A DNA stretch of 64,000 nt from Ruditapes philippinarum (lineage: Eukaryota). Position 1 is the first letter of the stretch, and every line of letters starts with the position of its first letter. Location: NCBI RefSeq assembly GCF_026571515.1, contig NW_026866679.1, positions 1 through 64,000 of the forward strand, read 5' to 3'. The translations under genes and the position numbers were made by a program. The notes beneath the pieces were generated by a model. It had not been told where the DNA came from, searched no databases, and worked only from the letters and a program-made list of their open reading frames with translations. Below are positions 23,661 through 59,701 of this stretch, one piece after another.

Positions 23661-23760
23661 CAATAGGTATCGTCAGACCCTCGTTAGATGCGTTCATTAT
23701 TCCAGAGAGAGTACTTAAATAAAGTACAATTAATATGCCAGAAAATATTCTATAAGTCAT
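23661..23760 (-). CDS. Alternative first coding exon A: MTYRIFSGILIVLYLSTLSGIMNASNEGLTIPI-G (signal peptide; probable ionotropic glutamate receptor)
   Basis: aaaATG start, 33 codons + 1 nt, hydrophobic core, phase-1 donor G/gtaagt. Paralogous to four other exons. Confidence 0.85.
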
Positions 23761-24198
23761 TTTATTTACACTAGATTTGTAACATATATTTAATCTAATT
23801 CAAAGTTTGGATATTCTTTTGACGATCAATGCTCTCTGCAAATCATATGCATATGTTTATAAAATATTACATATCCAACAACACGAGTGCCGATTTATGA
23901 CTAATTTGTTTAGCAAAGGCCAATGTTGTGTCTAATTGTCTGGACTTGCAGCATGCATTCTACGTGCACTGACTGAATAAGACCTTAACAAAATCCAACC
24001 TTATTTGTCACAATAATCCCTATGCTATTTTCAAACAAAGCCTCTTTGTAAACATTATACCTTGACAAGAAACTTCTTGTTTAACCGTTAATGCAAACAC
24101 TCAAAGGACAAAAACTTAAAACAATTTTTGTTTAACATGATCTCATAGGAATGTTGCAGCTTAAGAATAAGATGAAGTACTATAGCAACAGAAAGAAA

Positions 24199-24285
24199 TT
24201 TCCATAAGAAAGAGAAATGTATTGTTACTAAAATCCGATATTTGGTTAGAGAATGTCCAAATTTCATTTGACGCAGATTTTCGTA
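24199..24285 (-). promoter_or_regulatory. Conserved upstream module of exon A
   Basis: tccgatatt at 24234 and tgacg at 24269; 474 bp upstream of the ATG. Confidence 0.65.
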
Positions 24286-25435
24286 TCGTTTCTCGCTAAG
24301 TATGGAAATAGGGCCTCGAAGGCAGCTAGTTATAAACAAATTCCATTCTATCTGAAACGTATAATTACTTTATTAATCTATTAGATGGAAACGACATTCC
24401 ATAATGGGAGAAATAAATGGAAATTTCTACAAATCCCTTCCCACAGCTCAGTGCCAAAATTACGAAAATTTCTCTGGAAAAAGTACATTGAAAAGAACTT
24501 ATCAATAGTATTTGTTATGAAAGTTAAATGACATTTTTTTGTAAAATTAATTTAGTTTTTATTGAAATCTTCCACTGATGAGAAACAGAAAAAATAAATA
24601 TAAAAATTCATAAACAGAATTTATCGCTGATACACGCATTGCAAACTCATTACTTTGAGTTCTTCTAAAAAAAAGTCAGATGTATTTTCAAAAACAACAA
24701 CAAAACAAAAACAATTTTTTAATTGGACATATTAAAGATATCAAGGCAACGTCATATTAGAATCATAGAATCATAACTGTGTTTACCACTTTAAAAGATA
24801 CTCAAATTTTATTTTATCTTAATATGACAAATTAAGAATAGAACAATTATAGTATTGAAAGAAAAAGATAACTATTGCAAAAGCAAGTTCAGTCTTTAAA
24901 TTCAAATATTAATCATTCATATGGAACGCTTTATCAAGGAACAAAATGAATCATGTGCAAATAATTCATTAGATTTAATTAACATTCAAACATGTTCAGC
25001 GTAACTACCCAATTAAATGCTGTATTTCGAAATGTATCTGTTTAAAAAAATATTTCTAAACTTTTCAGCAAAACGTTTAGTATTGTAGTTACATTGCATG
25101 TTAAAAGTGAGCGGAAAGGTAGGATATTTGATTAAGTTAAGACATAAGTCTCCATAAAATTTGACATATGAGGCGACTCTTAGCCGAGAACAATGTAGAT
25201 CAATAGATATTGTTTGCACTTTATTACTTCGAAAAGTTCTTGGATGAAAAGTAAAATGAACACATAAATGGACTGATTTATAATAAGGAAAATATTTGAA
25301 GATAAAAAAAAAGTATTTTGTTTGAGACATTGAGATGGATGTAAAATTAAAATTAAAATATGAAACAAGCACACGTTTAGAATATTTTACTTTCTAATTA
25401 CCCACATAACAAATTAAACTAAATATCCGTAATGA

Positions 25436-25683
25436 AATGAGCCGCCTCACGACAAAACCAACATATTGCGTTTGCGACCAGCATGGATCCAGACCAGCCT
25501 GCGAATCCGCGCAGTCTAATCAGGAACCATGCTGTTCGCTTACAAACCCTATACATGTAACAAGGAGTGAAACTGATAGCGAACAGCATGGATCCTGATC
25601 AGACTGCGCGGATGCGCAGGCTGGTCTGGAACCATGCTGGTCGCAAACCCATTATGTTTGTTTTGTCATGACGCGGCTCAAAT
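25436..25683. mobile_element. Fold-back MITE of a type common in venerid clams
   Basis: Near-palindromic ~245 bp: tgagccgc...gcgaccagcatggatccagaccagcctgcg / cgcaggctggtctggaaccatgctggtcgc...gcggctca. Confidence 0.9.
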
Positions 25684-26785
25684 AATGAACGTCATGTAAA
25701 ATGTGATCAGCTTGTTAGCTGTTGAAATACCTTTAATGTCAAATAAAAGAAGTACATGTATCTCAGGATTTTGTTTTGTGGTAGTAAGTATTGTTTTTTT
25801 ACATATTTTGATTATTCTGTTTCATATATGTACTGTTCATTAAATGCCATTTTGATTAAAAACATATATATAATTATTACCATACAAGTAATTAATAGGA
25901 AACAGGTAATTTATTGACACTGTACCTGTACATATTTGTTAATATGGTTCTGACACTCAGAATGACTGTTAGTTCTTCTTGTAATTTTCCTTTTCCTAAT
26001 TACTTCAATTAATAATGAAAATAATTCATTTGTTGGATTAAAAACCGTCTTTTATGTGTTGTAATTTATGAATACTGAATATTAAGAACTTGTATATTCT
26101 TTGTATATACTTGAGTAAAATTGAATAACTAAATTTTAGTACACAGAACCTGCTTAATTGATGCAGTGATAATTCGAATCTAGTCATTGATACAATTTAA
26201 TACATTAGGCGCCGAAGCAAAGTGCAAAAAGACAGTCGTAACTCACACGCATATCGATTATTTGCCCTAGAGATATGTCCTATGCGCATCTTACTTTTGG
26301 ATTTAATGGTCAGCGATGTGATATACTTCATTAATGTTTTAACGAAATATTGTTCCTCAAAAGATAAAAGGGGCCTTATCATGTGTTCCTTTTATTATAT
26401 GATTGTAAACTCAAGTGGGTTTGGTTTTCTCCTTAAAAAGATGAGATTGAAAATCAGCCATCTTTGGTTTATTGGTGAGTTGACGCCAGGGAAAGGTCTT
26501 ATTTTTCACACATTCTATTATCATAGGAAATTAGGCAAATAACATCTTACAGGAATCTGTGACAGTCATAACCTAATCATTTGATATTTGTATTCACAAA
26601 TGTATTTTACTGATGGTTATTTTGTTTACTTTAACATTGTGATGAAATATTGGCCGTAAAATTGGCACGAAAACTGTATCTTGTATATTTTCATAAATAT
26701 TATTAATCTTATTTATGGAAATATTAATCATAAAAAGGGAGAATTTGGCATATAAAACATTTAGAACTGTCTACAAGTTACTCAC

Positions 26786-26885
26786 CCATTGGTATAGTCA
26801 CTCCTTCATTAGATGATTGTATTAATTCAGGATATGTGAAACAATAACACACTACTAAAAACAATACTAAACCATTCCAAGACAT
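26786..26885 (-). CDS. Alternative first coding exon B: MSWNGLVLFLVVCYCFTYPELIQSSNEGVTIPM-G
   Basis: acaATG start, 33 codons + 1 nt, hydrophobic core, phase-1 donor G/gtgagt. Confidence 0.85.
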
Positions 26886-27360
26886 TGTGATGAAATACTC
26901 TTATCTTCTGTGATTGTTTTACATACAAATGTGCAGCATGCTGATAATACAGGAGTCAGATGTAGTAATTTTGATGTTTAGCTATTAATTAAATATTAAC
27001 ACTTTCGTGGTCCGTAAGCTTTTTTCATTTAAACGTTGTTTACTAGTTGTTAATCACAGACGCAAATACATCATTGTTAGAAAATATATTAAAGAACTTA
27101 TGCATTAGATCAAATGACTGCATGATGTCAAATCTTTTATCATATGTTTACTTAAATGCATTGCTTACAATTCACACGATTCTTTAAGACAAACAAAATT
27201 ATTACCAAAAAACTAGAACACTGTCAATCCAAGTACTATCACATTAAAATCGTCACACATTACCGTCCATCATATGTGAGAATTCAGAAACATATCTTAT
27301 ACAATATAGAAATGTCACAGCCTTCACAATTAGAAAAATAGTCGGAATTACTGGAAGGCA

Positions 27361-27450
27361 TTTCCATAATAGACAGAATGTTTAGTAACTAAAATCCAAT
27401 ATTTGGACAGAGAATGCCCAAATTACGACTGACGCTGATTTCTGTGAAAT
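27361..27450 (-). promoter_or_regulatory. Conserved upstream module of exon B
   Basis: tccaatatt at 27395 and tgacg at 27430; 510 bp upstream of the ATG. Confidence 0.65.
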
Positions 27451-29288
27451 TTTTATTTTTATTTTCTATTGGCAAAACAGGGTATGAAATGCGACAGACA
27501 GCTCTGACTCGTGTTTCATTACAGTTTATAGAAACATTTCATCACAGCCGTAGTTCATTTTCATTGTATGCAGTGATTCATAGACAGACGACTGTTCTTT
27601 TTATGCAGAATTTTGTACATGTAGATGCAAATACTGGGTAGATAAAATATATTACATTTCGTGCTTGACAAAGATCAGCTATATAAAAATGTCTTGTCAT
27701 TTACTTATATGTTAAATTTATTATAGTGCAAAATAATGTGTATGTATATTCATAAAAAAATCACAAAATTAGAATGCATTAATCGCTGTTAAGACTTTAA
27801 GTACTTTCGCTATTCTTTCAGTATCTGTTTTGACATTGTTTCTTAACATGATATATGTTTTTTCCAGACTAACAAATTCATGAGTCAATATAAAATATTT
27901 AGTTTTAAAGAATAATTTAGTAGTAAGACTTTCATTATACTATAACATTTCTCTTGAAATGGTAAAACAACCCTATATATCTCTTTTTTTAACACAGTAA
28001 AAAGAAAACAATGTATAGAATTCGATTGCCTTACAAATCTGTAAATAAATGCTGCAAATGCTTAGCTTTATATAAGAGTGAGATGTTTTTATCTTCCGTC
28101 AAGAATAGTTTCCAGTAATGTTGATATAATAACTGTTTCAGAAAAAATAACGTTAATTATAGTTCGGTTAATTCAAAATTGCTTTAACTAGATACTTAAA
28201 TGTCATAGTAATTTTACTAACAATTCCCCTGAAACTTAAAACTGTACAGAAATGACTTCAACTTAGTTAAAGCATACGAGCCTGAAAAGGTCAATGTTCA
28301 TAGCGAATGCTGGTTGTTTAAGATTAGAATGCTTTTTATTGATAAAAATTGGTTTATAGATATTAATAATGGCATTTGTTGTTACGTGTGTGTATATGCA
28401 TTTCCATTTGACGCAAAAGACCAGCCAACATATAATAAAATATTAAGATATAGTTTCTTTTTCATCTACTTATTGATCGGCTGGCCCTAAATCAGTTGAC
28501 ATTTATCGCATATTTCACTCAAAGTATGTTCATATGTTTGAATCATTTTATTTTGCTCAACATAGATGACCATACTATTACAATTATCTTTAAGAAATGA
28601 CTATTCGTTTTTTAAATATCATAGTTCAACTGCTTATAAAAAAGACGATCTGTTATCAATATCTGTTTACTAAAAAAGCAATGTTCTTATGTTTCTGAAA
28701 CAATAACTGAAAAGAAAGTACAATAAATCGATGTTTATAGACAAATGTTTCGGGCGCTTCTGGAACAATTATTTTTGCTTGTTCTAAAGATGAAAAAAGG
28801 ACATTATAGATAATATGTTTTCAATAAGCTAAAGAAATTATATATTCTAGATGCAACATAATACTTGTTAAATGTAACTATAAGGTACTCATGAAAGAGG
28901 GAAATGCATATGGTTATATTTTTGTTGTTGTTTGTAGACTTGTTTTTTCTGTCATTTTCACTAAGATATTTACACACAATTTCAACACTTATGGGTATCA
29001 ATTTCAGACTTTTATATAAAATGAGAATATGTTACAGCATTTATGCAGTCATTATTACGAGATTATTGTATTTGGAAGTTTAAGTCGTCTGTATTGAGTT
29101 CAAATGGATATTTGTTTACACAGCTGTATTTATAACATAAAAAATAAAATTACGCTTGTAAAAAGAAACAATGCCTTTTTTCAATTTATCTTGTATACCT
29201 TTACAAATCTTTATGATGTTATATTTAAATTAAAAAATGTAAGAACTCAGATATCGAATCAACAAAAAATGTTTAGTATGTTACTCAC

Positions 29289-29388
29289 CAATTGGTATGG
29301 TCACCCCTTCATTAGATGACTGTATTAATCCAGGATATGTGGAAAGACAACACACTACTAAATATAGCATTAAACCATTCCAAGACAT
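29289..29388 (-). CDS. Alternative first coding exon C: MSWNGLMLYLVVCCLSTYPGLIQSSNEGVTIPI-G
   Basis: acaATG start, 33 codons + 1 nt, phase-1 donor G/gtgagt. Synonymous differences from exon B (CAA/CAG, GGA/GGG, ACT/ACC, TTG/CTA) and no indels. Confidence 0.85.
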
Positions 29389-29726
29389 TGTAATATAGAA
29401 TAGCTTCATATAAAAAATTGCAATAAGCTAAACACAGGCTAAGAAGTTGGGTTTTTTGTTAAATGTTTTATGTTAAACTATTTAATAATATTTTTTACTC
29501 TTTATACATGGGCGTTACATCACATGCGTTTGTAATTTCAAATATCTTTAAGAAGCAAACAAATCTAAAACACAGGAATACTGTCAATGTAATGAACACG
29601 AATTATCCCGTTTGAGATGTCACAAATAACTATCCATCATTTGAGAGAATAAAGAAGCATATTTTTATCCTACATAAATGTCACAGCTATAACGATTAGA
29701 AAAAAGTCAGAAATACTGGGAAGGCA

Positions 29727-29812
29727 TTACCATAATAGACAGAATGTTAAGTAACTAAAATCCAATATTTGGACAGAGAATGCCCAAATTACATCTGACG
29801 CTGATTTCTGTG
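29727..29812 (-). promoter_or_regulatory. Conserved upstream module of exon C
   Basis: tccaatatt at 29761 and tgacg at 29796; 373 bp upstream of the ATG. Confidence 0.65.
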
Positions 29813-32800
29813 AGGAATATTTTTTTTCTATTGGCAAAACAAGATATAAAATACTCTCGTGTTTCATTACAGTTTATAAAAGATGTTTCATCCCAGCCTA
29901 ATTTTTTCATTGTATGCAGTGATTAACAGACAAACAAATGAGTTTTTTTATGCAGTGATTTAAAGTTGAAAATACTGGATAGATAAAATATGATAATCAT
30001 GTCAGAGTGCATTGCTTTACGAATACTTACTCTATCAGATTTGTCTTTCGTTCGTATCATTTCATGTTATTATCATTGCATTGCAACACTTTATGTTTAT
30101 TTATTTTGCAAGTTAGAACGCAAGCTTTATATTATTTATGACTTTCAATTCAATTTAAATCGTTCTTTTATGAATTGGTAAATCAGCTACATTGTATGTG
30201 TGCCTTGTTAAAACCCCCCAAAAAAATAAATAATTACATATGAATTTCTATGAACCTAATGAATAATTGACGCGAACGACCTACAGATATGCTGTAAATA
30301 TTTAGATTAAATTTCTATTTTCAGAGTTTGTTTAGGGAAATACAGCTTTTATATAACCATGTTTACATGTTTACTCGTTGATCGGAGTGTCTTGACATTA
30401 TATCTCGCATTTTTAACTTAAAGTTTAATTGACTCTAAAGATTATTTTATTTATAAAATATTGATAAGAATACCTTATAACAAACATGTTTTTCACAATG
30501 CCGGTCTGTTAAAAATATTTGTTTATTGTACACAGTCACATACTTGCAATATTTCTGAAATGATCAATGCTTTTATTTATACTTATCAGTGAGGGACTTG
30601 GTTTTATCTGTATGATAATATCCATATCACCTACAGTATATTATCCACAGCGTGTGTGATATGGCTCTGCCGAACTATAATGAAAACGTTTTATGTTTTA
30701 TGATTCCATAAATTTTATTGTAAAATTTTGTTCCAGATGACATATTTCTCGATTGAATTACCATTAATTCTCAAAATGTGGTAATAGTTACCATGCAATA
30801 ATGAACCGCCTTGAATTATTTTTCTTAGCGTAGCGTTCGCGTAGCCGTTAAACGTCTGGCGTCATCTTCTTTGTAAACGTGTGTTTACCTGCGTTCCCAT
30901 GAAATGAGTCGAAAACTGCTCTTATTATACTTAAAAGGCAAAAAAATAAAAACCAATTTGTTTTTCGTGAATATACTATATATCATACATCGAAATGACA
31001 AAATGTCCACATTTTGCGCTAATTTTCTCACTTGTCAATGTGATATAAACCCTTAAAAAACCGATTTTATATTCCGGGAGCCTCTGAAATTATATTTTTG
31101 CTTGTTTAAAAATTCATCAGACATAAACTTTTATGAGTTTAAAAAATATCTTAAATAAAATATGAAATTAGTGTTATTTAACCTTAGTGTTATTTAACCA
31201 TGGTTGAGTTAATAAATTAAAGAAGTTTTATACTTAGGAGAAATTATTTCTCAAACTGATGCGTCAAAATGTGTAATGTTTTTCTCATTGCAAACTTACT
31301 TTAAGATGTTTAAACACGGTTTTAAAGCTTTAATAAATGTATCAAATTCTTAATAGTTTCTCTACATTTCCTAAGCTCATTGTACAAACCTATCTGTAAA
31401 TGAATTAACTTAGAAATGCCTGCACAGTCAGTCTAAGTGGTATAAGAAAGTGAGAAAATGATATTGTAGATACTTTTTTTCGTGACTAAACTTATAACGC
31501 CGCTGAAAACCAATTTGTTAAGGCAAGACCGAACGGCAGAAAATCCGGTTAATCGATTAAGTTCCCATGAATAATATCTTGTTCGCCTAAAAAGTGCAGA
31601 GTTGAGGATATATAACATCGGCCACATTCTTTGAAAGGCAATGAATATTAATACCATAATATGTTTGTGTTCATTGTGTTAGTCTGAGAGCTTCTAAATG
31701 CGCAACAACAAAAAACATGTTAAAAGTATTTTTCATTCTTTATATAAGCCCAATGGAAATAAAACATAAATTCAAAAAAGAAAATAACTTCTTCAAAACT
31801 CTATACATGACATATAATAGACAAGATGACATAGGCAGTCATCTTAAAGTTCGTGGTGGATTGTCGCTTGATCAATTTCAAAATATTTTGAAGTCGAAAT
31901 ATTCCCGTGGCGTGAGTAATATTCTTCCTTAAACATATAAAGTTGTCATAAAATGGTAACTATATGAAAATTATATTTATATAAATAAAGTAAAACAGTC
32001 TTAAAGTAAAATGTAACAAAATCTAAATCATTCTAAAACGTCAAGTCGTCTTTAGAGTGGGGACACGTTTTCAGAACAATTCTAGAAAATGTTCCAATGA
32101 TTTCCTTACAAGTCATCGTATCTTTACGGCGTTAAGGAGCAAATACAATGCGAGTCAATACGTCTCCTTTAATTGTATTGATGCAGCGAGATTTCATATA
32201 ACAATAGACATGCTCTTAATTAAGGAGGTCATAGAAAAGCTCTTAACACCAGAAACTAATATAAAATATGAGAAAAATCTACTAAAAATGTACATATAAA
32301 TCAGTAACCAGAAAGAAAGCGAAAGCTACAATATAAGCTATATATTAGCAATATGTGTTATATCAAAATGACGTCTAACCAGTTATTTAAGTTTTCCCTT
32401 TTTTTTGTAGTTTTCAATTACGTTATTCTTTTCATATTTAGTGTGGTATATATAAGTATATTTAATCTCGAATATGTGCGATGCTTCTCTCAACAAGTCT
32501 CAATAGCTACAAGATGTATTTATTATCCTACATGCCAACAGAATATCCGAGTAGATCTAGATTATCAATCTTTTTAAACCATCAAAACAAACAGTGATAG
32601 CATAGTAAGTAGATTCTACATGTACTTTAAAAGTGTTTGAAAACATCGATATTTTCTATAGGTTACTGGTGTTATGCAAATGATTTCGGTGAATCTCAAT
32701 AAACAGTGCAGTTTTTTATAAACGAAATAAACGAAATGTTTCGTTGCAGTAGCTTAAATAATTTGAACGTGCTAAAATTGTTTGGGTGACAGGCCGTATG

Positions 32801-35589
32801 GACTTCGTCCTCGCGAGAGGTTTGACAGAATTCTTTTTTTTAAACAGATTGAAATAAGGCGGAATTCTCCAGGAAGAATAATCTAGATTAAACTATTTAA
32901 ACTGAAGTCACATGAGATGGTTGTAACAAGATTGTTGTTATATTCTTGAATCAAGGTGATAGTTAAGTAAACGAATATGTATAACTTCAAATTTCAAGTA
33001 GTACCAAAGGACGTTACAATATCTTATTATTTCTGAAAGCCAGAGCATAACGTTTAATTTAACCTGAATTATTAATGGTCTGTTCTCTTAACTAAGACCC
33101 AAAAGGTAAAATTGAAGACATTTATAAAAAGAGGTAGAGAACAAGAAGGCATATTTGTAACTGACTGCGGTATATTTACTTTGTAAAAACATTCTATTAC
33201 AAACACGACTTTAAAACGAGATAATAAAGTTGACACAATAAAATAAACACGTACAGTAGAGAAACCAAACTTTCAAACAGAAGTGGCCTCATTATTGGAT
33301 AATAATAGAAAATCACAGTTATAAATAAGCGTGGAAAGAATATCTAGACAAAAATAGACTTCAAGGCACGGTTTTTAATGTTATCTTGATTTATCTAGAC
33401 AGTATATCTGAAATAGTTGGTTTCAAACATTATTATCTTGTCCCAATATTGCCTTTTAAACACACAAGAACAATAAAAAATGCAAAAAATGATTCATGTT
33501 TCTATAAAATGGAAAGCCTAGGCCTCTATGAATTATTGTTAACAAAACCAGTCTCATGAAAACAAATAATATGTAGAATATTTTGTATGATAGACAAACT
33601 ACGACTTCAGACAGTTTAAAGTGATATTTCCTTCATTTGGATATGAGTACATGTATATCTGAAATTCAAAAGAAGATTCACCAGAATGGTCAAGCAGATG
33701 TGGTCAGATTGCGATAATCTTGGAACATTCAAAAATGTCACGTTTTGTGTCATTCAATAAGAAGGTAAATTTAGTCCGAAAGTTCAAATGTGCGTGTGCC
33801 CTGTGTATGGATCTTATTGAATATTTGTATGCTTATGATATATCTATCTGTTTGAAAACAAATACAAAAATAATATTCTTGTTTAAATGCGAATCTACAT
33901 AGTGCGTTCACTTCTATATATTTTGAATATGATCTATTTCCGAAGTATTTAATAACTATTTATATGAGCATTAATCTATGAAGGTTTTGTCAAAATAAGG
34001 TAAATGATTTGTATTCAAGAAATACAATATTCGTTCACTAGTAAGATTATCTCCATGCAAGTCAAAACTAAACATTATATATATAACGTGATTTTGTAAT
34101 TGCATTGTACTTTTAGAATTTCTTTTGAAAAATGTTATTTGTTATATATATTATGTAAAACAATTAAATCTTTCTTGTACAACAATATTGATTTTAACGG
34201 AAAACCTTCTGTCTAACGTGTCTCTCAATTCAGTTAATTGAGTGCATTTTTTAAATAATCATATACACGTAAATGTACATTGTATTATGTTCTTTCACAA
34301 GAGATTTCTTGCCAAAATATTCCAAGATTTATACTTAATAGATAGATTCTGTCAAAGAGATAATGCGTTCAGACAAATGCTTTTATGTCCTTCGTAAAAG
34401 CCTTTACGTGTTACAGTTATAGGACATGAAACACAAGTTAAGTAGTATAACATATTCAGCCAAGTTGGATGTGATACAAATTTTAACTTCTATAAATAAG
34501 TTATATTGATTATTCTCAAAATGGCATGCATCCTAATTTAGCTAACTTCGCGAGCTTCATATATTTTACAATTTACTTATATTCAGTCTACAATACTTTT
34601 TTTCTATTGTACTTATGGAGGCTTGATTTAAATTGATAGCTTACTTTAAACAAACTGTTACTTATATATTATCATATTCAAATATGATCACTGTAAAACT
34701 CTTCAGAAATTGAATTCAAGCATGGTTTCTTTCCGTTTTATAATTTCTATTAGATTTTCATTACATGATTTTGTTATAGCTTTGACCGAAAATAAGTGTG
34801 AACAATATATTTTTTGACTGCATTGATGTTTTCGATACACATGCAAATAAAATACTCGGGAGTCCTTTCGAATGGTTTATTTACGTCTGCATAAAACTGG
34901 TAAAAACTGGGAAGGACAATATAGGAGCAATTTTATATGATAACTAAAGTTCTGCTTTTCCAGACATATTGTATAAAACTTAGCTCTAAGAGGATCTAGA
35001 CTGCTATGCAATCACCAAATTATAATTGCAGTTCCGGTTTCTCAAATGTGAAATTAACAATGGACATTATAAATTGATTTAAATGTTACTAAAATATGTC
35101 CTTTTAATCTGACTACTTAATATTTTACTTACTCAGTTTGATTAAATTTTTACAAATATTATCATGTCTTCAACAAATGATCAATTATTTCATGTATACA
35201 TGTATACATTTGTATTTGTAAATATCTAAAATAGAAATAAAAAAGAAAGTCATCTATAAAAGCGTACATACCATCCAATATTTATACCTCATCTTATCTG
35301 TTTTAGTACCTTTTTTTGAAATTGAAACCTATAGATGACGTTGTTATTACAATGGTTTCACTTACTTGCTTATGCAAAGCTTAAAACGGCTACATTTTAC
35401 TTAAAAGTATCGGATTGCAATGACTATATTACATATAAGAAGGGTTAAGTAAATATGGCAATTCACAGCCGAATATATGTATATGCTGTTGAATTCAAAA
35501 GAAAACATTTAAAAAAGTAATTAATTTGGTTTCGAAGATTTATGATTAAAATAACTAAAGGATATGCTCTGGACAACAATTACAAACTA

Positions 35590-41400: not shown

Positions 41401-41624
41401 AATCTAGATTCTCGCAAGGTCAGGTAAGTTAAAAGAACATGCATAAAAAATTAAAATTCAACTTGTAAAAGCATGTAAAACTAGAACAGTAATGATTATA
41501 ACCTACAGACAAAAGAGTTTGTTTTAACGGGTAGGTGGCGATATATTCTTAAGCATTTGTTGTAAAACATTTAAAAAGTTCCCGTACCGTATATTTTTAT
41601 GTCTGTCACATAACAAAGTGTCTG

Positions 41625-47925: not shown

Positions 47926-48028
47926 CAACAGGTATCGTTAATCCTTTATATGATGCTTGTTTAACTCCAGAACAAATAAAAAAACTCAAACCCAAAAACG
48001 CATGTGTGAATAAAGACTTATAGATCAT
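47926..48028 (-). CDS. Alternative first coding exon D: MIYKSLFTHAFLGLSFFICSGVKQASYKGLTIPV-G
   Basis: aaaATG start, 34 codons + 1 nt, phase-1 donor G/gtaagt. Corresponds to the first half of ORF-track entry 47843..48028. Confidence 0.83.
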
Positions 48029-48639: not shown

Positions 48640-48715
48640 CTCTCTAAAGGATAGATACTGTTAGAAAACGATATCCGATATTCTGTAAGAGAACATGAAA
48701 CTTAATTTTAACTTC
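48640..48715 (-). promoter_or_regulatory. Diverged upstream module of exon D
   Basis: tccgatattctgtaagagaa at 48674; the second half has decayed to taact at 48709; 646 bp upstream of the ATG. Confidence 0.45.
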
Positions 48716-49979
48716 CTTTTCATTAAAATAACACTTAAACGGTCATTTAAAATGGATATTAAATGAATACTAACTAAAATGGAAAGGAAAATCATTTTAT
48801 TTTAACTCTTGATATAAAGAAGTTTTTTTTTAAAGTAGTAGTTTCTGCTCGAAAAAAAAAACAAACAAACACACACATTGATTCGCGAGTGCTTATTAGC
48901 AATACAACAATTATGATGTTTCAAAATATACTATCATTACATTAAATATCAAAGTAATTATACAAGACTCGGGTGTGCGTATGAAGTCCATAAAAACATC
49001 GTTATTTTACAAACCTTACACATTCTCTACAAAAAGCGGTAGATGTCTGAAGCAGTTCAGAGTCAGCCAAATGTTATGTCGTTGGCATTCATCGTTCGTC
49101 TTACAAAGCTTGACATAATTTCTTTAAAATCGCGTGACCTATTTGTTTGCGGTGTTCGTTTTTAGCTGATCTCGAAAGATTTCAACTTCTTATGCGTTTC
49201 ATAAATTTATAAAAAGCAAAACTATCTAATAAAATATAAAGATACCACTATTCCAATTAAAAGAACAATGGAATGTTACTTATTTTTTGTATCAGGAACA
49301 AACTTTGTTGACAATTTCGGAGATAACAGGTTGTATCTTAATGAAAAAGTGAAAATATTTTTGAAGCAATACTTCTTCATTTTTATTATCAGACTGAAAT
49401 ATTTTATCGCTTGAAGAACTATATTTTAGAGAAACATGTAACATTGATCTCAAAACAATACTTTCCTTTATTTTAATTATTCTACATTATACACTTTTAT
49501 TTTCACGGTGTCAACTTTTTAAACGAATTGTTTTGCGTTTTATAAAGCTAATTCTGATTTAAATAGTAGGATTTCATTGTCCTGTTAGGCTAGTGACTTG
49601 CATGTAATTAACAGTGTATTCCAAAAATCAAGATCAAAATTCAAGCAAAATTTGAATCCTTGTAGAGACAGACTACCGTAGACAACGATTTTGTCTTGCA
49701 AACACCTCATAGCTAATGCATTTATTTGACTGTCTAACGTCACTCACAGATAGATATATTTAGTCTTGCAGCTATTTCCGAAATGTTGAATTTTTCATGA
49801 GAATAATTGAATTGAAATGTTTACTTTACTTTTTAAGGAAATTTACAGCACTAGAGTTGTCAATTCCGTAAAGTACTATTAATAATATAGTTTGCTGGAA
49901 ATACACAATGTATATTTTTCATTCTGTTAGTTATATACTGCAAATGTTTCGTCTTATATACGCTCGAAGCATACAATGA

Positions 49980-52900
49980 TGTTTTCATGGAGGGTACTGG
50001 AAAGTGCAATGTTCCATTCACGCCCCTAGCACCGGCTTAAGGAGAATTAAACATATAAACACGAAAGAGGTGAAAAAGCATCCGCAGATGTGTCCATACG
50101 GCGGTTATTATAGAACCTTAAATGTGACATAGTGGTGCTATTCTATGAAAAGCGGCTAATGGTCCCAAAGTTAAATAATACATGTGCCCTAAACGAGAAA
50201 ACAATGGGCGGAACTAAATAAAATGAAATTTTGAAAGGGGTCTGAGGTTGTGGTTATGTAAAACAATAAGAATAAAGATCAACACGGCAAAGGCAAAGTT
50301 CACAGGACGCGGCCCCGACACACCCAAATAGAGAAAATAAGAATCCCTAAAGAATCCTGCCACCACAGCAGGACACTCAGAAAGCACAATACCGATACCG
50401 GGAGTGGACATAAACGCGGGAAAAGGAGGAGAGGGACATGTAATGTGTGAAATAATAAAAACTAAAACGGGCCCGTTGTAAGGCTGAAAATGGGGGAAGG
50501 ATGAAAAATGGGAGAAGGTGGGGCGGGGGAATACTTACTGTTAACGACAATTTAATAAGGTAGATATCACGGGGGGTGAATACTTACTGTTAACGACAAT
50601 TTAATAAGGTAGATATCACAAGACATATAAACATTCAAAACAAGTAACAAAATAGACATGTGAAACACGTGAAGGAACACAGAGGGGTACCGCCTTGGAA
50701 CAGTGAGTGGTAGTTACACCACTGGGGAGTTTAAACGGATTTTAGGTACGCCAAACCTCTTTTTTAGTACCAATATATTCCTATATGACACGACAGTATA
50801 AATAGAATTAATCCCTGCCTACTAAAATACTAAAAAGTGGTCATGGTAGCATTATATGAAATTAATAAACGCATCAATAATGTGAAAATATGTACAAAAA
50901 GGCACAGCCTTGTGACCATTACCAAAGTACTCTATGCCTTAAAGGAAGACAAGAAAATCACTTACAAGGGCCTGGCGAAGCAAGACAAAAATATGATAAG
51001 TAAATAGATAAAAACAGAATCCCTAAAGAAAGCCCAACATGGCAAAATTGAAAATGTTGCAGACTCGGTTTGATTGAGCCTGTTCATGGACGGTACTGGA
51101 AAGTGCAAGTTACCGTCCACGCCCCCTAGCACCGGCTTAAGCAGAATGCAACATTTAAACATGAAATAGTAAAATTTTGAATTTAGAAACATTCGCAGAT
51201 GTGTACGGCGGTTATCATGGAACCTTCAATGTGACACTTCCATGGTCGGCGTTCAATGAACGCAACCCCCATACGACCCAGCAACAAGAACCAGTGGCAA
51301 GGCTTTGAGAACTTTTCATCATAGAGTCTCCAACTAAAATATGATAAACAAGATCGACAAGGAAAGGCGGCATTCAATGAACGCAGCCCCCACCAGACCC
51401 AGCAACAAGCGCCAGCGGCCAGGAGCCCAGGGGGACCCCAAAGAAAAACAGGACAGGGCACAAGGCAGAGTACGGACAGGCAAACCACTACATCAGAATA
51501 CATAATAAGTAACTTATAAGGAAATAAAACAAAACATATAAATGATTTAATATAAGGGCCACAATGTCAAAAGGCACAGGGGAAGGGGACAAGAGACACG
51601 GGGAAGGGGGGGGGAAGATAAAATAAATATAAACCAGGGACAAAGGGAAGATACTTACCGTAGACGAGAAACAACAAGAGACACGAGCAAAAGTGTCACC
51701 AAAACAGTATAAAACAACATAGACATACATCTGAGGAACACAGAGGGGCGCCGCATTGGAACGGTCAGCAACATTATAATGACTACTGGGGAGTTTAAAC
51801 CGGTTAATGGTGCACCAAACCTCGCTCTTAGCCCCACCATGTTCCTATAAACGAGACAGTGTAAATAAAATGAATCCCCGCCAAGTGAAATTCTAACAGT
51901 TGTTATGGTTACAAAAGGTTAAATAAGTAAAACACCAAAATGATCATGTAGAAACATATAAAAGTAAACCCAATGACCATAACAAAAGTACTCGATGTCT
52001 TAAAGGAAGACAGAGCAACAAGAAAATCACCTACAAGGGCCCGACGAAGCAAGACAGAAGACAAACATTAAGGCAATTCAGTCCCAAAGGGCTTTAAGAA
52101 CTGTCCATCATATAGTCTCCCACTTGGCCCGTCAGATGTAATCAAAAGAGGAAAGCTAGTGTCCAACTGTAAATGGGTTGAACACTAAGCATGCGGTATG
52201 CCTTAAAATAGTAGGGTCATAACCCCTTTTAATAAAACGTTTTATAATTTTAGTAAACACAACAGAAAAATTACAATGACCCAAGATCTTACGAAGTTTG
52301 TAAACCACATCACCGTAAAAATCAGGCTGGCTAATCCTTTGTCGCAGAAGTGTTTTTTTTTTAGATCACTATTGAATTTTGAAATTAAATCAAAGTTACG
52401 ATTGTAAAATTTTGTAAAATATTTACGTAATTAATAATAGCGGTAGCCCAGTTTTAGAAGCTTACCGGTAATGAAAATATTTCGCTCGTTAAAATCCTTG
52501 ACGTTGCTACAAGCTCAAATATTAGACACCATTTGATCCGACAAGGAAAGGCGGCATTCAATGAACGTAGCCCCCACCCGACCCAGCAACAAGCGGCAAG
52601 GAGCCCAGGAGGACCCCAAAGAAAACTAAGTCCGTCAAATGTTATTAAAAGAGGAATGCGTAACGTCTAACTGTATAAGGGTTGAACACTAAGCATGCGG
52701 TATGCCTTAAAATAATTGGGTGATAACCTCTTTTAATAAAACGTTTGATAATTTAATTAAGTGAAGACAGCAGAAAAATTACTATGACCATTGATCCTAC
52801 AAAGTGTGTAAAAATCTTGAAACAAAGTGATCCATCGGAAGCATTAATCACAACAAAATTACATGAAAATTGCAGACTCGGTTTGACTGAGTCTGTACAT

Positions 52901-53240
52901 GAGGGATAATGAATAAGTGCAACATCCCTCACGCCCCTAGCACCAGCATTGAACGCCGCCTTTCATTGTTGATCTTGTTTATCATATTTTGAGCAGTACT
53001 CAATTCTCAACACTTAATAGTTCTGGCATCAATGATCCTGAAGGACCAGAAAAATATAACTAAACAACAAAAAACAAGAATAAAGATCAACAAGGCAAAG
53101 GCAACGTTCACAGGACGCGGCCCCCGACACAGTCAAAAAACCTAGAGCGGACATAAGGGTGAAAGGGGTGGGACATGTAATGTGAAATAATATCAACTAA
53201 AACGGTCCCATAAGGGAATTAAAGGGATAAGTACTGTAAG
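49980..53240 (-). mobile_element. Cluster of rearranged Penelope-like (probably Naiad-type) retroelement fragments, UTR/pLTR-like segments
   Basis: Two diverged copies of ggaacacagagggg..ccgc.ttggaac...actggggagtttaaac (50670-51040, 51730-52060). Repeated gacaaggaaaggcggcattcaatgaacg blocks. Adjacent RT remnant. Confidence 0.7.
52110..52515 (-). pseudogene. Penelope-like reverse transcriptase C-terminal remnant (second partial copy at 52630-52815)
   Basis: ACSNVKDFNERNIFITGKLLKLGYRYY*LRKYFTKFY...ISQPDFYGDVVYKLRKI...LRHTACLVFNPFTV resembles the thumb region of molluscan PLE RTs. It has in-frame stops and a break at an A-run. Confidence 0.85.
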
Positions 53241-56200
53241 GGTGAAAAGGTGTGCACTGAAGTGAAGTACGGGGCAACTTTCTACAGATGCCACACGGCA
53301 CTTGCCATCAGCTGTTGTGAAGTATAAAAATCTGGAAAACAAAGTGATGCCTCGGAAGCATAATCTAGACTGTACATTTTGGACAAATTGCCCCTTCCCC
53401 CCACCCCTTCAAAGTACTCTTGATGATGATTTATGACAATAATGAGACTCAGTAAGAGGAAAACTTTGTGGTTTGATATCATCAGTTAAAGTACAAGGAA
53501 TTTTATTTTACTGGGTCGGGTGGGGGCTACGTTCATTGAATGCCGCCTTTCCTTGTCGGATCAAATGGTGTCTAATATTTTGCTCCTCCTGTAATTACTG
53601 CCAACAGGTATGAATGTATGTATCACATTTTTATTACAATAATGAGACTCAGTAAGAGGAAAACTTTGTGGTTTGATATCATCAGTTAAAGTACAAGGAA
53701 TTTTATCAGGCCTGATTTGCTCCTCCTGTAATTACTGCCAACAGGTATGAATGTATGTATCACATTTTTATTGCTGATAAAATTGTGGATGTGGATATGT
53801 CAAGTGTATCTCTATAAAAGTGTTGTCATAGTTAGATTTGTTCCCCATTCACAAGAAATGTATAATTTCTGGAAGTGTTTCTGTTTTTAGCTCACCTGTC
53901 ACAAAGTGACAGGGTGAGCTTTTGTGATCGCTTTTCGTCCGGCGTCCGTCCGTCGTCCGTCCGTAACCTTTTGCTTTAAATGACATCTCCTCATAAACCA
54001 CTGAGCCAATTTCATCCAAACTTCACAGGTTTGTTCCTTTAGTGGTCACCTTTAAAAATTGTTCAAAGAATTTAATTCCATGCAGAACTCTGGTTGCCAT
54101 GGCAACCGAAAGAAAAATCTTTAAATATCTTCTTTTAAACAACCCTAAGAGCTAGAGCTTAGATATTTGGTATGAAACCTCTTCTAGTGAGTGTCTACCA
54201 AGTTTGTTCAAATAAAAGCCCTGGGGTCAAAATTGGCCACGCCCCAGGGGGTCATTGATTTTCCCTATATATGCATATAGTAAAAACTTTAAAATCTTCT
54301 TTTAAAGAACCCAAAGAGCTAGAGCTACGATATTTGGCATGAAACATCTTCTAGTGAGTGTCTACCAAGTTTGTTCAAATAAAAGCCCTGGGGTTATAAT
54401 TGGCCCCGCCCCAGGGGGTCATTGATTTTCCCTATATATGCATATAGTAAAAACTTAAAAATCTTCTTTTAAAGAACCCAAAGAGCTAGAGCTAAGATAT
54501 TTGGCATGAAACATTTCTAGTGAGTGTCTACAAAGTTTGTTCAAATAAAAGCCCTGGGGTCAAAATTGGCCCCGCCCCGGGGGTCATTGATTTTCCTTAT
54601 ATGTGTATGGCAAAAACTTAAAAATCTTCTTTGAAAAAACCCATATAGCTAGAGTTTAGATATATAGCATGAAACATCTCCTAATCATCGTCTACAAAGT
54701 TTGTTCAAATAAAAGCCCCGGGGTCAAAATTGGCCCTGCCCCTGGGGTCATTGATTTTCCTTTTTTTGTGTATAGCAAAAACTTAAAAATCTTCTTTGAA
54801 AAAAACCAAATAGCTAGAGTTTAGATATTAAGCATGAAACATCTTTTAGTAAATATCTACAAAGTTTCTTCAAATAAAAGCCCGGGGGTCAAAACTGGCC
54901 CTGCCCCAGGGGTGTCATTGTTTTTAACTATATGTGTATAGTAAAAACTTAAAAAATCTTCTTTTAAAAACCCAATGAGCTAGAACTTAGATGTTTAGCA
55001 TGAAACATCTTCTTATGGGTGTCTACCAAGTCTGTTCAAATAAACAAATAAAAGCCCTTGGGTAAAAATTGGCCCGGGGGGGGGGCTATATACAGGTGAG
55101 CGACCTCAGGGCCATCATAGCCCTCTTGTTTTAGTTACCTTTTCCTTTACCGTGATACACTTCACTTAATTCAATGACGGTACTGCAAATGAATTTGTTG
55201 TGTTTTGAATAACATCCCTGTTTCCAAAATTCATGAAAAATTGCCTCCCTTTCTTCAGTATATATTTTACTATGACACTTTTTTACAACTTTGGCCGCAC
55301 CAACTATTTAGAATTCTTGCTTGCTTGATTTTACCTGATAAAATTGCATATGTTTCACCTGCGTTTTTTTCTTTGTTACATTTTTTCCACACATCTTCAA
55401 TTCTTTGCCTTTTACGGCTGCGTTTTGGAAAAAAAAGACACTTGAACACGGACAAGGACGTACCAGAGCCTTGAGACACAGCAGACTGGCTGGAACAAGG
55501 AATGGGAGAGACTTTTTTATGCAGGACCAGACTGCTGTGTCTAATCAGACTGGTGGAAACTAGATAGATATACAGGTAGCTGGAACTGATTGATGTCAAG
55601 TCAGCCTGATCTGTACTGATCATAGAGCTTTGTGGATCACACTTATGTGTCAGATTAGACTGTTCATTAATTAACAGTATTTGCTGTGTTGTGTCATTTC
55701 TTAAAGATTTCAGAATCATACTATCTGGTGTATTTTTAATTTCTTTAAAGTTGTTGAAAATCTCTATAAAAATTGAATCAAGAAGTGTGGTACTGTCATT
55801 CAAATTCTCAAACGCCTCAGATAAGTCTTTAATGCTGTAATTTGCTTCAATAGATGGAACACTGCTGACAGTTGACATACTAGATCAACCAGCATACCAT
55901 TTTGAATCACGTAAAGACGACATGCAAGATCCTCATTACTCACATCAGAAAAAAAAAGATAAATACAGAATCACATCAGAAACCATCAAAATTTGAACCA
56001 GGCATGTCTGTGTTGCCTGGAATGGCAAATACACTTACAGCTTCAAAATGAATATTTTTGTTTTTGTCAACTGAAGATTACAGATGTCGTATAAACAGAC
56101 ATAATGCAGAGATACTGTTTTGTACATGTATAGTGAACACAGCTGTTCCATCTGATCCTTGCATTCTAGTTTTATTTCTTGAATGTGGATCAAAAATTAA

Positions 56201-56595
56201 GGATCTTTCTTTGACAAATATGAGAGCTGTACTGTCACCTGGTGTCATGTTACCCATAGTAAAAATGCATTTGTTCCTCTCAGAATTGTCGTCAGGGCTT
56301 CTTCTAAAGTAAAATATGGGCACTTTTTTCTGGAGACTCATTGTTAAACCAGTCAGGACTTCATCGAATTTCAGGCAGTAATAAAAATAATCACACTGAT
56401 GTTTTAGATCTTCTATTATGAGATATCTATTGGCTTATTTTTTGTATGCAGGGTATATAAGTGCTCCAAAATATAATCAAGCATACCTAGACACCATTCA
56501 CTAACAGGTGTTTTATATGATTTAAGAAAAGCTTCCACAGATTTGTCATGCACTGCCTGTCGTTAGCACATTTGTTGTGGCACTTATGATTGTAA
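53240..56595 (-). pseudogene. Decayed Helitron/Helentron-type ORF with a herpes-tegument (peptidase C76) deubiquitinase-like domain
   Basis: RQCMTN/..AFLK..PVSEWCLGMLDYILEH-LY...YLIIEDL (56390-56570) and LIFDPHSRNKTRMQGSDGTAV (56135-56205), followed by the 202-aa ORF 55270-55878. Many frameshifts; interrupted by 53885-55132. Confidence 0.65.
53885..55132 (+). mobile_element. Non-autonomous Helentron-type (pearl/DINE-like) element with ~6 internal ~166-bp tandem repeats
   Basis: 5' agctcacctgtcac-aaa-gtgacagggtgagct hairpin, then a CGTC microsatellite. Repeats with agctaga at ~54150, 54316, 54484, 54647, 54812 and 54978. 3' caggtgagc subTIR plus agggccatcatagccct hairpin. Inserted in a T run. 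Confidence 0.92.
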
Positions 56596-56869
56596 CCTGG
56601 GGAAAAAAGACTTATTAAAGAGAATACTTTCTAAATTTATGATTAAAATATCTAAATTTACAAGAACAGTCAACAGAACAAACGTTAATACATATCGAGC
56701 CATGATCAAAGAAAACTAATGCTGAATAAATTTGAATTTAAAGAAAGACCAAAAAATATAATTTTCCATTCATTATGAAGAATAAAAAATTGCCTGTCAG
56801 ACTGCATCAAAAGTTATTTTGGATAATCATATTTTATTAAATTGCATTGAAACGTTGTTAACTTTGTAT

Positions 56870-57158
56870 CATTTTGTAAAAGTGAGATTTGTCTTAATTG
56901 AAGAAATATCTAAATTTAAACAATACAAATTGTTTATGTTTAATTCAGTGTTTCCAAAATAACATAGTTAATAAATATTTGTCTTCTTATATATTAAATT
57001 ATACAATTTCAAAATTTTGTAAAAGTGAGATTTGTCTAAATTGAAGAAATATCCAAATTTAAACAATACAAATTGTTTATGTTTAATTCAGTGTTTCCAA
57101 AATAACATAGTTAATAAATATTTGTCTTCTTATAAATTAAATTATACAATTTCAAAAT
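56870..57158 (+). repeat. Two-copy tandem repeat, ~143-bp unit
   Basis: agtgagatttgtct at 56881 and 57024; units nearly identical. Confidence 0.9.
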
Positions 57159-57298
57159 TCTCCCAAATTTATAACAATACAGAGACTAAGATAAAGATAA
57201 TCGCAAAGTCAAGTATTAAAAATCACTTTAAAACGGTTACTGTTGTTACATAACATGATGTAAACTAATGATATGTAAACATGATCTGTATAAATTGT

Positions 57299-57563
57299 TG
57301 GGGCGTCCGTGGCCGAGTGGTTAAGGTCGTTGACTTCAAACCACTTGCCCCTCACCGCTGTGGGTTCGAATAAATCCCAACAGATTCTTTCATGTGAGAA
57401 GCTATCCAGCTAGCTTACGGAACGTCGGCGGTTCTACTCAGGTGCCCGTTCGTGCCTGAAATAATGCACGGAAGGGCACCTGAGCTCCTCCTCTATCAGT
57501 ATAAATAGAACGTCGCCAAATGACCTATACTCTGTCGGTGTGACGTAACCCCCTAAAAAACCC
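57299..57563 (+). mobile_element. tRNA-derived SINE (RUDI-like) with 11-bp target-site duplication
   Basis: A box tggccgagtgg, B box ggttcgaa, A-rich tail. TSD gtataaattgt at 57288-57298 and 57564-57574. Confidence 0.92.
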
Positions 57564-59601
57564 GTATAAATTGTACATGAATTTGACTCTGATAATGTCA
57601 TAATTTGGCTCGGGCGATGGCATAATTGTGATGTCACAAACATAATTGCACTGAATAACCCCAATGAAGATGAAAATATTTTGGTGCAATAAGTGAATAT
57701 GTGGACTTGTATCATTCTTGCACGAAATTTAATTTAGTACAGAAATATTGGTGCAACAAGTGAATATGTGCACTTATTCAATTATTGCACTGAAATAAAA
57801 TTTAAATGTTAATGTTACATTTTGCTTTTATGTATTAAAGTCAAATTTTTTTATAAAGTATGGCTCCAATATTTTTTCAGGACATTAAATAACACTGTTT
57901 TTAAAATAATTTATTTTATAGCAAAAATAATTTTGAGAACATTTCCACTTATTGGAGTTTTTACCCTAAGATGACGCGCAACTATATTTTAGTTAAATCG
58001 TTGATTTTTAAGTTTGTGTCTATCAAACGATTTTGTTCAAACGAGTTATCATAAAACGATATTCTCTTTTTAGAAGAATTAAAATGCTTCTCAATTGAAA
58101 ATTACTGACAGTATAGATTAAAAGAGAAAATGCTTTCAGAATAAAATTTGTTAAGTATCATGGATTGTCTTTTGAAATTAAGAACAATTCCAAACAATAC
58201 AAATTGCTAGTCTTAACAATTACATTCCCACAATATATTTTTTCCAGTTTACAATTACTCTTATGTCGAAAGAGGCAGTCAACTAACTTAAGGTACATTA
58301 GGATGCGTTCAAGTTAGATGAATCGTCAATTACATCTTGTGTAACGTAGTTCGCTTCACGCCGTTAACAGACATACTTTTTGTGGAGTAAATAAATAACA
58401 AATAATGTGATCTTTAGGGAGAAAATAACGTAATAAAAAATCGGCTTCTCAACTATGCCTTAAGGTTATCATTTTGCTAAGAGTTTTAAAGCTACAATGG
58501 AATAATCTGGTTAAGATTACGTCACTCATGAACTGTTTGTTTTTGTATCTTTAATGTTCTCAACATTTATTTCTTTAAAGGAAATATGTCATATTTTAAT
58601 TTGACAAAGATTTAATTACTCAAACTGAGGTATGCTTTATATTTGACATACCGACAAACGAAGCAACACAGTCGGAAAGTCTTATATTTTAGTAACATTT
58701 CATTAGACACTACGTCTATTACAAACACGATAATGTGTATATGTATGTAACAGAGAGTTTGTTTTCTTTATAAATAATTTGAAAGTAATATTCATTTTAT
58801 TCTTAGAGGATTAAATTAATCAATAGACAACCCCCTGAGAATTTCCTCCTTTACTCTGTTTAGCACGTTAACAAACTGTAAAAAGTTTTTTCCCCAAGCT
58901 AGCTCATTACCACCTACAAAAGACAATGTCCAGTTAAGGCAGAAATGATAAATACTTAAATAATGAGACAGACTGACCTCAATGCTAAAAGTACGTACTT
59001 TATTCATAACGCCAATAAATTTGCGTTGAAGTTTTAAAAAAAGTGTTAAAAGAAACGTATATATTCAAATCGGATTGTGGTATTATAATAAATAAAACAG
59101 AATCACGTTTAATTGATGCCTTTATCAAATTGTTTGGGCATAGCTTTACGTTCGTTCAATAATATCTTCAAATAATTGAGTTTCATGTTTGTCTTTTTCT
59201 TAATTTGCACATATAATATTCTACTCATTCATTTTTTTCATGCTGCTCTCTTATAAATTGAATACAATCATTGAAATATAAATCATCAACTGATAATATG
59301 TCAAATAACTTTAAACTCTAAATTTCTGTTTCTAATGTAAGTTGTTTCTACAGAGGAATCCATGACATAATATTATTTTTTACATTGATTTATGTTTACT
59401 TAATTTTATATATCGTATAGCAAACGGTTTGCGTTCAGCGAACGCCGCCTTTCCTTGTTGATCTTGTTTACCATATTTTGGCTTATGTAACATTTGACTT
59501 GACCGATTTTAATAGCCTTTGGGAGAAAACTGCATGTAATGTATCGATGTTTAAATATTGCAAGTGTCATTCTCAATGATAGGAAAGGTTTTTAGACTTA
59601 C

Positions 59602-59701
59602 CTATAGGAATTGTCACTCCATCATATGATGTTTTTGTAATTCCAGGTGGAATTGTCAAGTAATATATAACGATCAAATAAGTATATTCATTCCAGTACA
59701 T
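59602..59701 (-). CDS. Alternative first coding exon E: MYWNEYTYLIVIYYLTIPPGITKTSYDGVTIPI-G
   Basis: aaaATG start, 33 codons + 1 nt, phase-1 donor G/gtaagt. Confidence 0.83.

Follow-up and report, generated by a model that had tools for sequence, protein, structure and literature searches.

What kind of gene is served by five short, related exons that all lie on one strand and each encode little more than a signal peptide? This question is raised by a stretch of the genome of the clam Ruditapes philippinarum. The window, i.e., the whole stretch of 64,000 nucleotides (nt) that was analyzed, comprises bases 1-64000 of a contig of 349,941 nt (NW_026866679.1, here called C15166). An earlier note on this window had described five leader exons (A-E) and proposed that they form a protocadherin-like cluster of variable first exons, spliced to one common exon 2 beyond the left end of the window. 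Here, a follow-up analysis is presented which extends to a second contig, C8334. It suggests that A-E are probably the distal half of an array of alternative first coding exons, at least eleven in number and arranged in two sub-arrays, that belongs to one gene for an AMPA-type ionotropic glutamate receptor (iGluR).

The five leader exons of the window

The earlier note had listed five exons with their coordinates and lengths, an A at position -3, a common ending and phase-1 donors. All of these were confirmed by direct reading of the sequence. The exons, which are 100, 100, 100, 103, and 100 nt long (A-E), are the following:

23661..23760, minus strand, leader exon A: 100 nt, end ...ASNEGLTIPI plus a split G, donor GTAAGT; last leader before the contig end
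26786..26885, minus strand, leader exon B: 100 nt, end ...SSNEGVTIPM plus a split G, donor GTGAGT
29289..29388, minus strand, leader exon C: 100 nt, end ...SSNEGVTIPI plus a split G, donor GTGAGT
47926..48028, minus strand, leader exon D: 103 nt, end ...ASYKGLTIPV plus a split G, donor GTAAGT
59602..59701, minus strand, leader exon E: 100 nt, signal peptide followed by ...TSYDGVTIPI plus a split G, donor GTAAGT; most distal leader

All five follow a common plan, namely an ATG with A at -3, a hydrophobic leader, the ending S[NY][EKD]G[VL]TIP[IMV] plus one G, and a phase-1 donor GTAAGT or GTGAGT. Exons B and C are 87% identical at the DNA level. Also the spacing that had been claimed, 3.1 kilobases (kb) between A and B and 2.5 kb between B and C, is correct.

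The likeness of A-E is far beyond chance. A profile of the five leaders, searched against the 1.4-Gb genome, retrieved A-E alone at E < 1e-14, the next match having an E-value of 0.49. Furthermore, a codon-level regular expression applied to 174 kb of DNA on both strands matched A-E and five relatives, which are described below, and nothing else.

On the nucleotide level, conservation among A-E is limited to the donor and the final 30 nt or so of the exon. The ungapped identity amounts to 0.73 at the exon end and falls to 0.34 immediately before the ATG and to 0.31 within the intron. Values of 0.31-0.34 represent the chance level for such A+T-rich DNA, and this level is reached within a few bases beyond either edge. 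Within the last 6-9 codons, the proportion of synonymous differences (pS) is 0.66-0.69, which is near saturation, and the proportion of non-synonymous differences (pN) is 0.11-0.14. In addition, two or three different codons are used for each of the invariant residues Ser, Gly, Thr, Ile, and Pro. Due to the saturated pS, the low pN and the varied codons, A-E are regarded as old duplicates which have been retained as coding sequence, and not as chance open reading frames (ORFs) or recent copies.

Exon 2 and the host receptor gene

The second contig carries an exon that fits the donors of these leaders:

C8334:71928-72077, plus strand, exon 2: acceptor ttgtttatttcag, enters in phase 1 and leaves in phase 1; 1.4 kb after the nearest leader, J

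Exon 2 starts G/GT GCA ATT TTT, where the GT completes the split Gly codon of the leader. The joined reading is G-AIFTEED... and continues AIFTEEDRLAKTAFRY / AIFTEEDRLAKTAFRYALSKHN. The end of a leader (...IPIG) together with the start of exon 2 (AIF...) yields the first beta-strand of the amino-terminal domain (ATD), in which I-x-I-G is followed across the junction by G/A-[IL]-F. Exon 2 itself gives a weak alignment (E 0.26) with ATD residues 20-60 of GluA3.

Within the genome, exon 2 is without a close paralogue, the next best match being 40% identical. This match, C1257:86413-86553 on the minus strand, belongs to another iGluR gene, the next ANF exon of which lies approximately 25 kb downstream. 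The earlier note had postulated a common exon 2 to the left of the window. Structurally, such an exon is present, namely a single, genome-unique phase-1 acceptor exon that completes the Gly codon and lies on C8334 beyond the window end; its use by A-E would follow from the model below.

Downstream of exon 2, between 71.9 and 89.4 kb of C8334, ORF pieces corresponding to the ATD, S1, M1-M2, M3 (SSYTANLAAF), S2, and M4 are present in this order. Pfam searches matched PF01094 (ANF_receptor) at C8334:73344-73598 on the plus strand and PF00060 (Lig_chan) at C8334:85894-86088 and 87639-87815. The M3 motif SSYTANLAAFLTIERM as well as the M4 piece can be read in the list of ORFs of this contig. A single channel exon of 125 residues was compared with solved structures, and all 60 of the 60 matches listed were GluA2, GluA4, or GluA1 with E-values of 4e-45 to 1e-42. 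Judged by these sequence matches, the host gene is most likely an AMPA-type iGluR, and the AMPA/kainate-type host suggested previously was upheld by Pfam matches, ordered domain pieces and GluA structures alike.

A possible peculiarity concerns the pore loop (C8334:85711-86085, ...NSLWFAMGALMLQGSD). Aligned to GluA2 (...NSLWFSLGAFMQQGCD), the position of the Q/R site would be occupied by Leu. A Leu at the Q/R site would be unusual for an AMPA-type subunit.

Six further leaders beside exon 2

The earlier note had asked for a search for further copies of the leaders. Profile and regular-expression searches revealed six more on the plus strand of C8334, co-oriented and located 1.4-21 kb upstream of exon 2, which they adjoin:

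C8334:50790 (or 50763)-50898, plus strand, leader K: found via its own upstream block and a looser regular expression
C8334:54255-54351, plus strand, leader F: found by profile and regular expression
C8334:59903-60002, plus strand, leader G: found by profile and regular expression
C8334:66093-66198, plus strand, leader H: found by profile and regular expression
C8334:68288-68402, plus strand, leader I: found by profile and regular expression
C8334:70461-70557, plus strand, leader J: found by profile and regular expression

These proximal leaders again consist of an ATG and a hydrophobic leader, and end with Q[NGM]Y[IVG]P[DE][GA][IV][IV]VPI plus G in front of a GTAAGT, GTAAGG, or GTGAGC donor. 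A profile of ten leaders produced significant genome matches on C15166 and C8334 only; it failed to pick up leader K, and its sensitivity is therefore incomplete. The count has to be read as at least eleven, with the DNA examined reaching to 94 kb on C15166 and to 100 kb on C8334.

Thus, all eleven leaders share an ATG with a purine at -3, a hydrophobic leader and a phase-1 donor of the type GTRAGT, GTAAGG, or GTGAGC. In the last codons of both the distal and the proximal group, pN is 0.11-0.14 vs. a pS of 0.66-0.71, i.e., the last codons of both leader groups are under purifying selection. Each leader comprises 32-38 residues, a signal peptide followed by approximately 9-13 mature residues (cleavage sites placed by eye). 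In an alignment using these by-eye cleavage sites, the residues after cleavage are nearly alike within each group and different between the groups.

Repeats at the contig ends and the probable order of the two contigs

Since the leaders A-E and exon 2 are located on different contigs, their relative position has to be considered. Here, the left end of the window offers information in form of a local tandem repeat:

8527..16368, unstranded, tandem unit, first copy: no coding exon detected
1..5994, unstranded, tandem unit (~10 kb), second copy: 83-95% identity to 8527-16368, truncated where the contig ends
5988..7929, unstranded, block S, the spacer between the unit copies: one other genome copy, C8334:1-2149

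This local tandem duplication of ~10 kb was found at the leader locus only. Block S is 78% identical to C8334:2149-1 on the opposite strand, and this copy lies at the extreme end of C8334. On an intact unit, the window end in leader direction corresponds to position 8524 and the start of C8334 to position 7929, so that both contig ends lie ~0.6 kb apart in one repeat unit. The orientation of the matched ends places the plus strand of C8334 downstream of the window leaders. Taken together, these matches are good but indirect evidence for C15166 and C8334 being neighbors, with the break in the assembly falling within the tandem repeat. The break was probably caused by the tandem duplication itself. 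The co-orientation of the two leader groups across the contigs depends on this inferred join.

If the contigs are joined in this way, the distances from the donors to exon 2 are about 132 kb for E, 120 kb for D, 102 kb for C, 99 kb for B, and 96 kb for A. For the proximal group they are 21 kb (K), 17.6 kb (F), 11.9 kb (G), 5.7 kb (H), 3.5 kb (I), and 1.4 kb (J). The second copy of the tandem unit (window 1-5994) would be intronic in the proposed gene.

Two further repeats were observed in this region. The tandem unit contains a dispersed repeat of ~100 nt (4667-4762 and 1182-1278) that has many copies genome-wide. Window positions 16378-17514 are 82-95% identical, on the co-oriented strand, to C8334:93907-94966, shortly beyond the 3' end of the receptor gene.

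Absence of other coding exons near the distal leaders

As the window begins with the first base of C15166, it contains only 23.6 kb downstream of exon A. Within these 23.6 kb, no receptor-like, phase-1 open exon of at least 35 residues with a pyrimidine-rich acceptor was found. An all-against-all comparison of all window ORFs of at least 25 residues revealed no other group of paralogous ORFs that goes along with the leaders, and sensitive blastn searches detected no paralogous stretches after each leader. No Pfam domain above chance was present in 142 minus-strand ORFs of at least 30 residues (5.9-23.5 kb), nor in 150 minus-strand ORFs of at least 40 residues (24-59.6 kb). Genome-wide searches with ANF_receptor and Lig_chan gave zero matches on C15166, and the 150 longest ORFs on both strands of C8334 1-50 kb were likewise free of Pfam domains. 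Based on these ORF and Pfam screens, the 74 kb between leaders A and K contain no recognizable gene. Hence, the claimed lack of further coding exons among and downstream of the leaders withstood the ORF, blastn, acceptor, and Pfam screens.

These results bear on the idea that A-E belong to five small genes arranged in tandem, each having one or more exons of its own nearby downstream. The spacing of A, B, and C by 2.5-3.1 kb would suit genes for secreted peptides, and exons below 25-30 residues would escape the screens. Nevertheless, no paralogous ORFs between the leaders and no Pfam domain were detected, the ending ...IP[IMV]-G opens an ATD strand whose second half comes from exon 2 (AIF...), and six relatives sit directly before exon 2. 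This makes five small genes a highly improbable explanation.

Some features of this DNA stand apart from the leaders. The window region 50000-56000, located between E and D, has a G+C content of 0.37-0.41 vs. ~0.29, a strong AT skew and internal repeats. Within it, a 167-nt satellite is repeated 5.6 times (54121-55044), and a minus-strand ORF of 204 residues (55273-55884) is without a Pfam match. This island is probably transposon-derived. On C8334:7812-8210 (plus strand), an ORF of 133 residues resembles the zinc-knuckle C-terminal tail of ORF2 of non-LTR (long terminal repeat) retrotransposons (...FRTGNHRLPVETGRW...CNLC...DEFHYLFTCP...); it has no Pfam match.

Conserved non-coding blocks upstream of the leaders

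According to the earlier note, each leader would have its own regulatory start. Structurally, a conserved element does precede each of A-E, which may mark such a start. A core of 23 nt, TTCYMTNWMMRAATATYGGATWT, occurs in exactly five copies in the window, all on the minus strand and 370-643 nt before the ATGs of A-E:

60137..60159, minus strand, core before E: 436 nt upstream of the ATG
48671..48693, minus strand, core before D: 643 nt upstream of the ATG
29619..29991, minus strand, conserved block before C: 79% identical to the B block; core 29758-29780
27252..27650, minus strand, conserved block before B: core 27392-27414
24198..24280, minus strand, conserved block before A: 81% identical to the B and C blocks; core 24231-24253

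A, B, and C share a block of 83 nt around the core, and B and C share a block of 400 nt which has no other copy in the genome. The core pattern was derived from the five sites themselves, and shuffle statistics are biased for this reason. Genome-wide, the pattern has only one extra match, and a reversed control has zero matches. The extra match, at C6101:4440-4462, is regarded as chance; no leader-like exon lies downstream of it. A coding function of the upstream blocks was rejected, because the frames differ (A vs. B and C) and stop codons follow directly in B and C.

A different block of ~210 nt is located 200-540 nt before the ATG of the proximal leaders K, F, G, H, and J and is, genome-wide, confined to the leader locus. 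Taken together, a locus-specific block is present 200-650 nt before the ATG for five of five distal and five of six proximal leaders. By eye, a shared GGACAY...AAC...GGAT pattern had suggested homology between the distal and proximal elements. This was dropped, as local alignments compared with shuffled sequences reached z <= 2.7 at most and the best alignments lay off the elements. As an observation on the proximal blocks themselves, TGACGT motifs resembling half-sites of the cAMP response element (CRE) occur twice in the F block (L008:3823-4035), twice in the G block (L008:9427-9638), and once in the K block (L008:380-600). The H and J blocks have TGACAT or TGACAA where the F, G, and K blocks have TGACGT.

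Are the leaders first exons at all, or are they mutually exclusive cassettes fed by one shared promoter and an upstream non-coding exon? Within the 60 nt before the ATG, ten of the eleven leaders lack an AG preceded by a pyrimidine tract, and leader C has a single weak one at -39. The sequence just upstream is also unconserved (identity ~0.3), and ten of eleven leaders possess an own conserved block further upstream. The weak site of leader C would fit cassettes, the leader starts were read from genomic DNA, and the DNA to the right of the window, where a shared exon might lie, was covered in part (C15166 to 94 kb). Overall, cassettes fed from a common promoter appear quite unlikely.

Proposed gene model

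The preferred reading is that of a gene with alternative first exons. Here, exon anatomy, selection, the uniqueness of leaders and exon 2, the fit of phases, the upstream blocks and the host family are observed, and the contig join, promoter activity and splicing are what we infer from them. Transcription would start upstream of one leader, at a promoter marked by the conserved block 200-650 nt before the ATG. The donor of the chosen leader would then be spliced to the acceptor of exon 2 at C8334:71928, the sole one available, and leaders further downstream, being without acceptors, would leave together with the intron. Since ten of eleven leaders are without an acceptor-like site near the ATG, the donor of the leader at which transcription started could use the exon 2 acceptor only.

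Each leader would supply the start codon, the signal peptide and ~9-13 mature residues, ending midway through the first beta-strand of the ATD. All products would share the whole receptor body and differ in promoter and 5' untranslated region (UTR), signal peptide and class of mature N-terminus. Two such classes would exist, a distal one with S[NY]xG[VL]TIPxG and a proximal one with Q[NGM]Y[IVG]P[DE][GA][IV][IV]VPIG. This suggests that the array would mainly diversify when and where the receptor is made, rather than its ligand binding. Possibly, it also alters entry into the endoplasmic reticulum (ER) and trafficking.

Public protein collections were searched for traces of the locus. Among 1.84 billion representative proteins, the five-leader profile matched only P0001, an unspliced ORF call of 35 residues, besides an unrelated repeat protein. 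With exon 2 and with ten aligned leaders (G left out) as queries, a collection of 5.8 billion sequences yielded only P0003 and P0004, both being unspliced genomic ORFs. P0001 is a B/C-like leader on an independent ENA contig, P0003 is exon 2 with 88% protein identity on an independent Logan contig, and P0004 is leader K with three substitutions on an independent JGI contig. These independent contigs indicate that leader and exon 2 sequences exist in other individuals or related species.

Several observations weigh against the proposed model. The array is known here from genomic DNA alone, and the join of the contigs follows from the repeat structure, without a spanning sequence. If this join is correct, the distal leaders are 96-132 kb away from exon 2, followed by a leaderless gap of 74 kb before the proximal group starts. 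The ~210-nt block is absent upstream of proximal leader I, a profile of the proximal block has no match in the window, and the upstream regions of distal and proximal leaders are without significant similarity. In the protein collections, a spliced product of leader and exon 2 was not found among entries that were unspliced ORF calls only, which is neutral with respect to splicing. Novel or small exons below 30-40 residues would slip through the ORF and Pfam screens. Finally, the host reading frame is not intact as assembled, and translation would end where the M4 exon joins. The 98-nt exon that precedes M4 (C8334:88945-89042) reads MNMAVLMLME in the frame of the preceding exon and MLPKLKRTWWKDKGVC in the frame of the phase-0 M4 exon. 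Between ...MLME and MLPKLKRTWWKDKGVC, one G is present where 0, 3, or 6 bases are expected.

An alternative is that only the six leaders on C8334 serve the receptor, and that A-E are orphans of a missing or lost paralogous gene body or are no longer spliced. The unspanned join, an exon 2 at least 96 kb away, and two groups that differ in their mature N-terminus without detectable similarity upstream would all fit, as would a locus known from genomic sequence. Strong constraint on the protein level with saturated synonymous sites is, however, difficult to reconcile with orphans. Furthermore, the assembly contains no close paralogue of exon 2, the contig ends match a single repeat unit and are correctly oriented, and a related leader ORF, P0001, lies on an independent ENA contig. 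We therefore consider orphaned distal leaders unlikely.

The frame discrepancy raises the question whether the array is without present function and the entire locus a pseudogene in decay. The discrepancy before M4, where translation as assembled would stop at the exon junction, would be in line with this. In contrast, every other recognizable piece of the receptor is open and correctly ordered, constraint acts on the leaders and exon 2, and an exon 2 ORF of 88% identity is present on an independent Logan contig. A lone discrepancy of 1 or 2 bases would also be expected from an assembly error or a private null allele. A pseudogene is thus very unlikely, and the discrepancy may stem from an assembly error or a null allele, or may be the recent lesion of a young pseudogene. 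The exon C8334:88945-89042 is, moreover, the homologue of the vertebrate flip/flop exon.

Comparison with known systems

In protocadherin and UGT1A clusters, the choice of the promoter sets the choice of the splice site, and downstream first exons are removed with the intron. The clam locus resembles these clusters by its tandem, paralogous first exons of the same orientation, most of which have an own upstream element. Its variable exons also have a 5' but no recognizable 3' splice site, and the proposed common acceptor would be located far downstream. In contrast to these clusters, the clam variable exon of ~100 nt encodes a signal peptide and about ten mature residues but no binding domain, and the constant part represents almost the whole protein. 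Furthermore, the conserved elements of the clam bear no relation to the protocadherin element, and each of the two sub-arrays has a different one. Hence, the comparison with protocadherin clusters applies to the gene architecture. As the earlier note had remarked too, it does not extend to the content of the variable exon: no recognition or substrate-binding domain is encoded, only a leader with ~9-13 further residues.

Alternative promoters combined with alternative leaders usually involve two or few unrelated exons. Examples are the IgLON genes Lsamp, Ntm, and Opcml with their promoters 1a and 1b as well as BDNF, where alternative promoters and first exons provide alternative signal peptides (PMC5288359). 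In these genes, the processed protein is identical or nearly so, which has been read as regulatory diversification in neural genes (PMC5288359). Like the 1a/1b leaders, the proximal leaders of the clam would give almost identical mature ends. The difference lies in the number and origin of the exons: two non-tandem exons in the IgLON genes vs. eleven paralogous leaders in the clam, which fall into two sub-families, are under purifying selection and yield two classes of N-terminus.

Among the iGluRs, the clam gene resembles GRIA1-4, since its channel exon matches GluA2, GluA4, and GluA1 (E 4e-45 to 1e-42). As far as is known, vertebrate GRIA genes have a single signal-peptide exon. In the full-text literature collection that was searched, no description of an array of alternative leader exons was found for any iGluR. 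The clam array is structurally solid and would be unusual for a synaptic receptor.

Implications for receptor diversity

Here, eleven tandemly duplicated leaders would be present on the gene of a synaptic receptor, most with an own upstream element and selected long enough for the synonymous sites to become saturated. For GluK1, one study reports that the signal peptide controls trafficking by binding to the ATD (PMC6242971). For the clam, a choice among eleven promoters that is specific for the neuron type or stochastic, together with leaders and N-termini that alter ER entry, surface trafficking or binding of ATD partners, is a speculative and rather unlikely scenario. If it was true, it would constitute a system of receptor identity built on leaders instead of binding domains.

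If the exons are used, one receptor body would have been diversified in its regulation by duplicating modules of promoter plus leader and not by duplicating whole genes. In this case, the clam locus would also be a tractable example for how signal peptides and the first residues of the ATD tune the biogenesis of ionotropic glutamate receptors.

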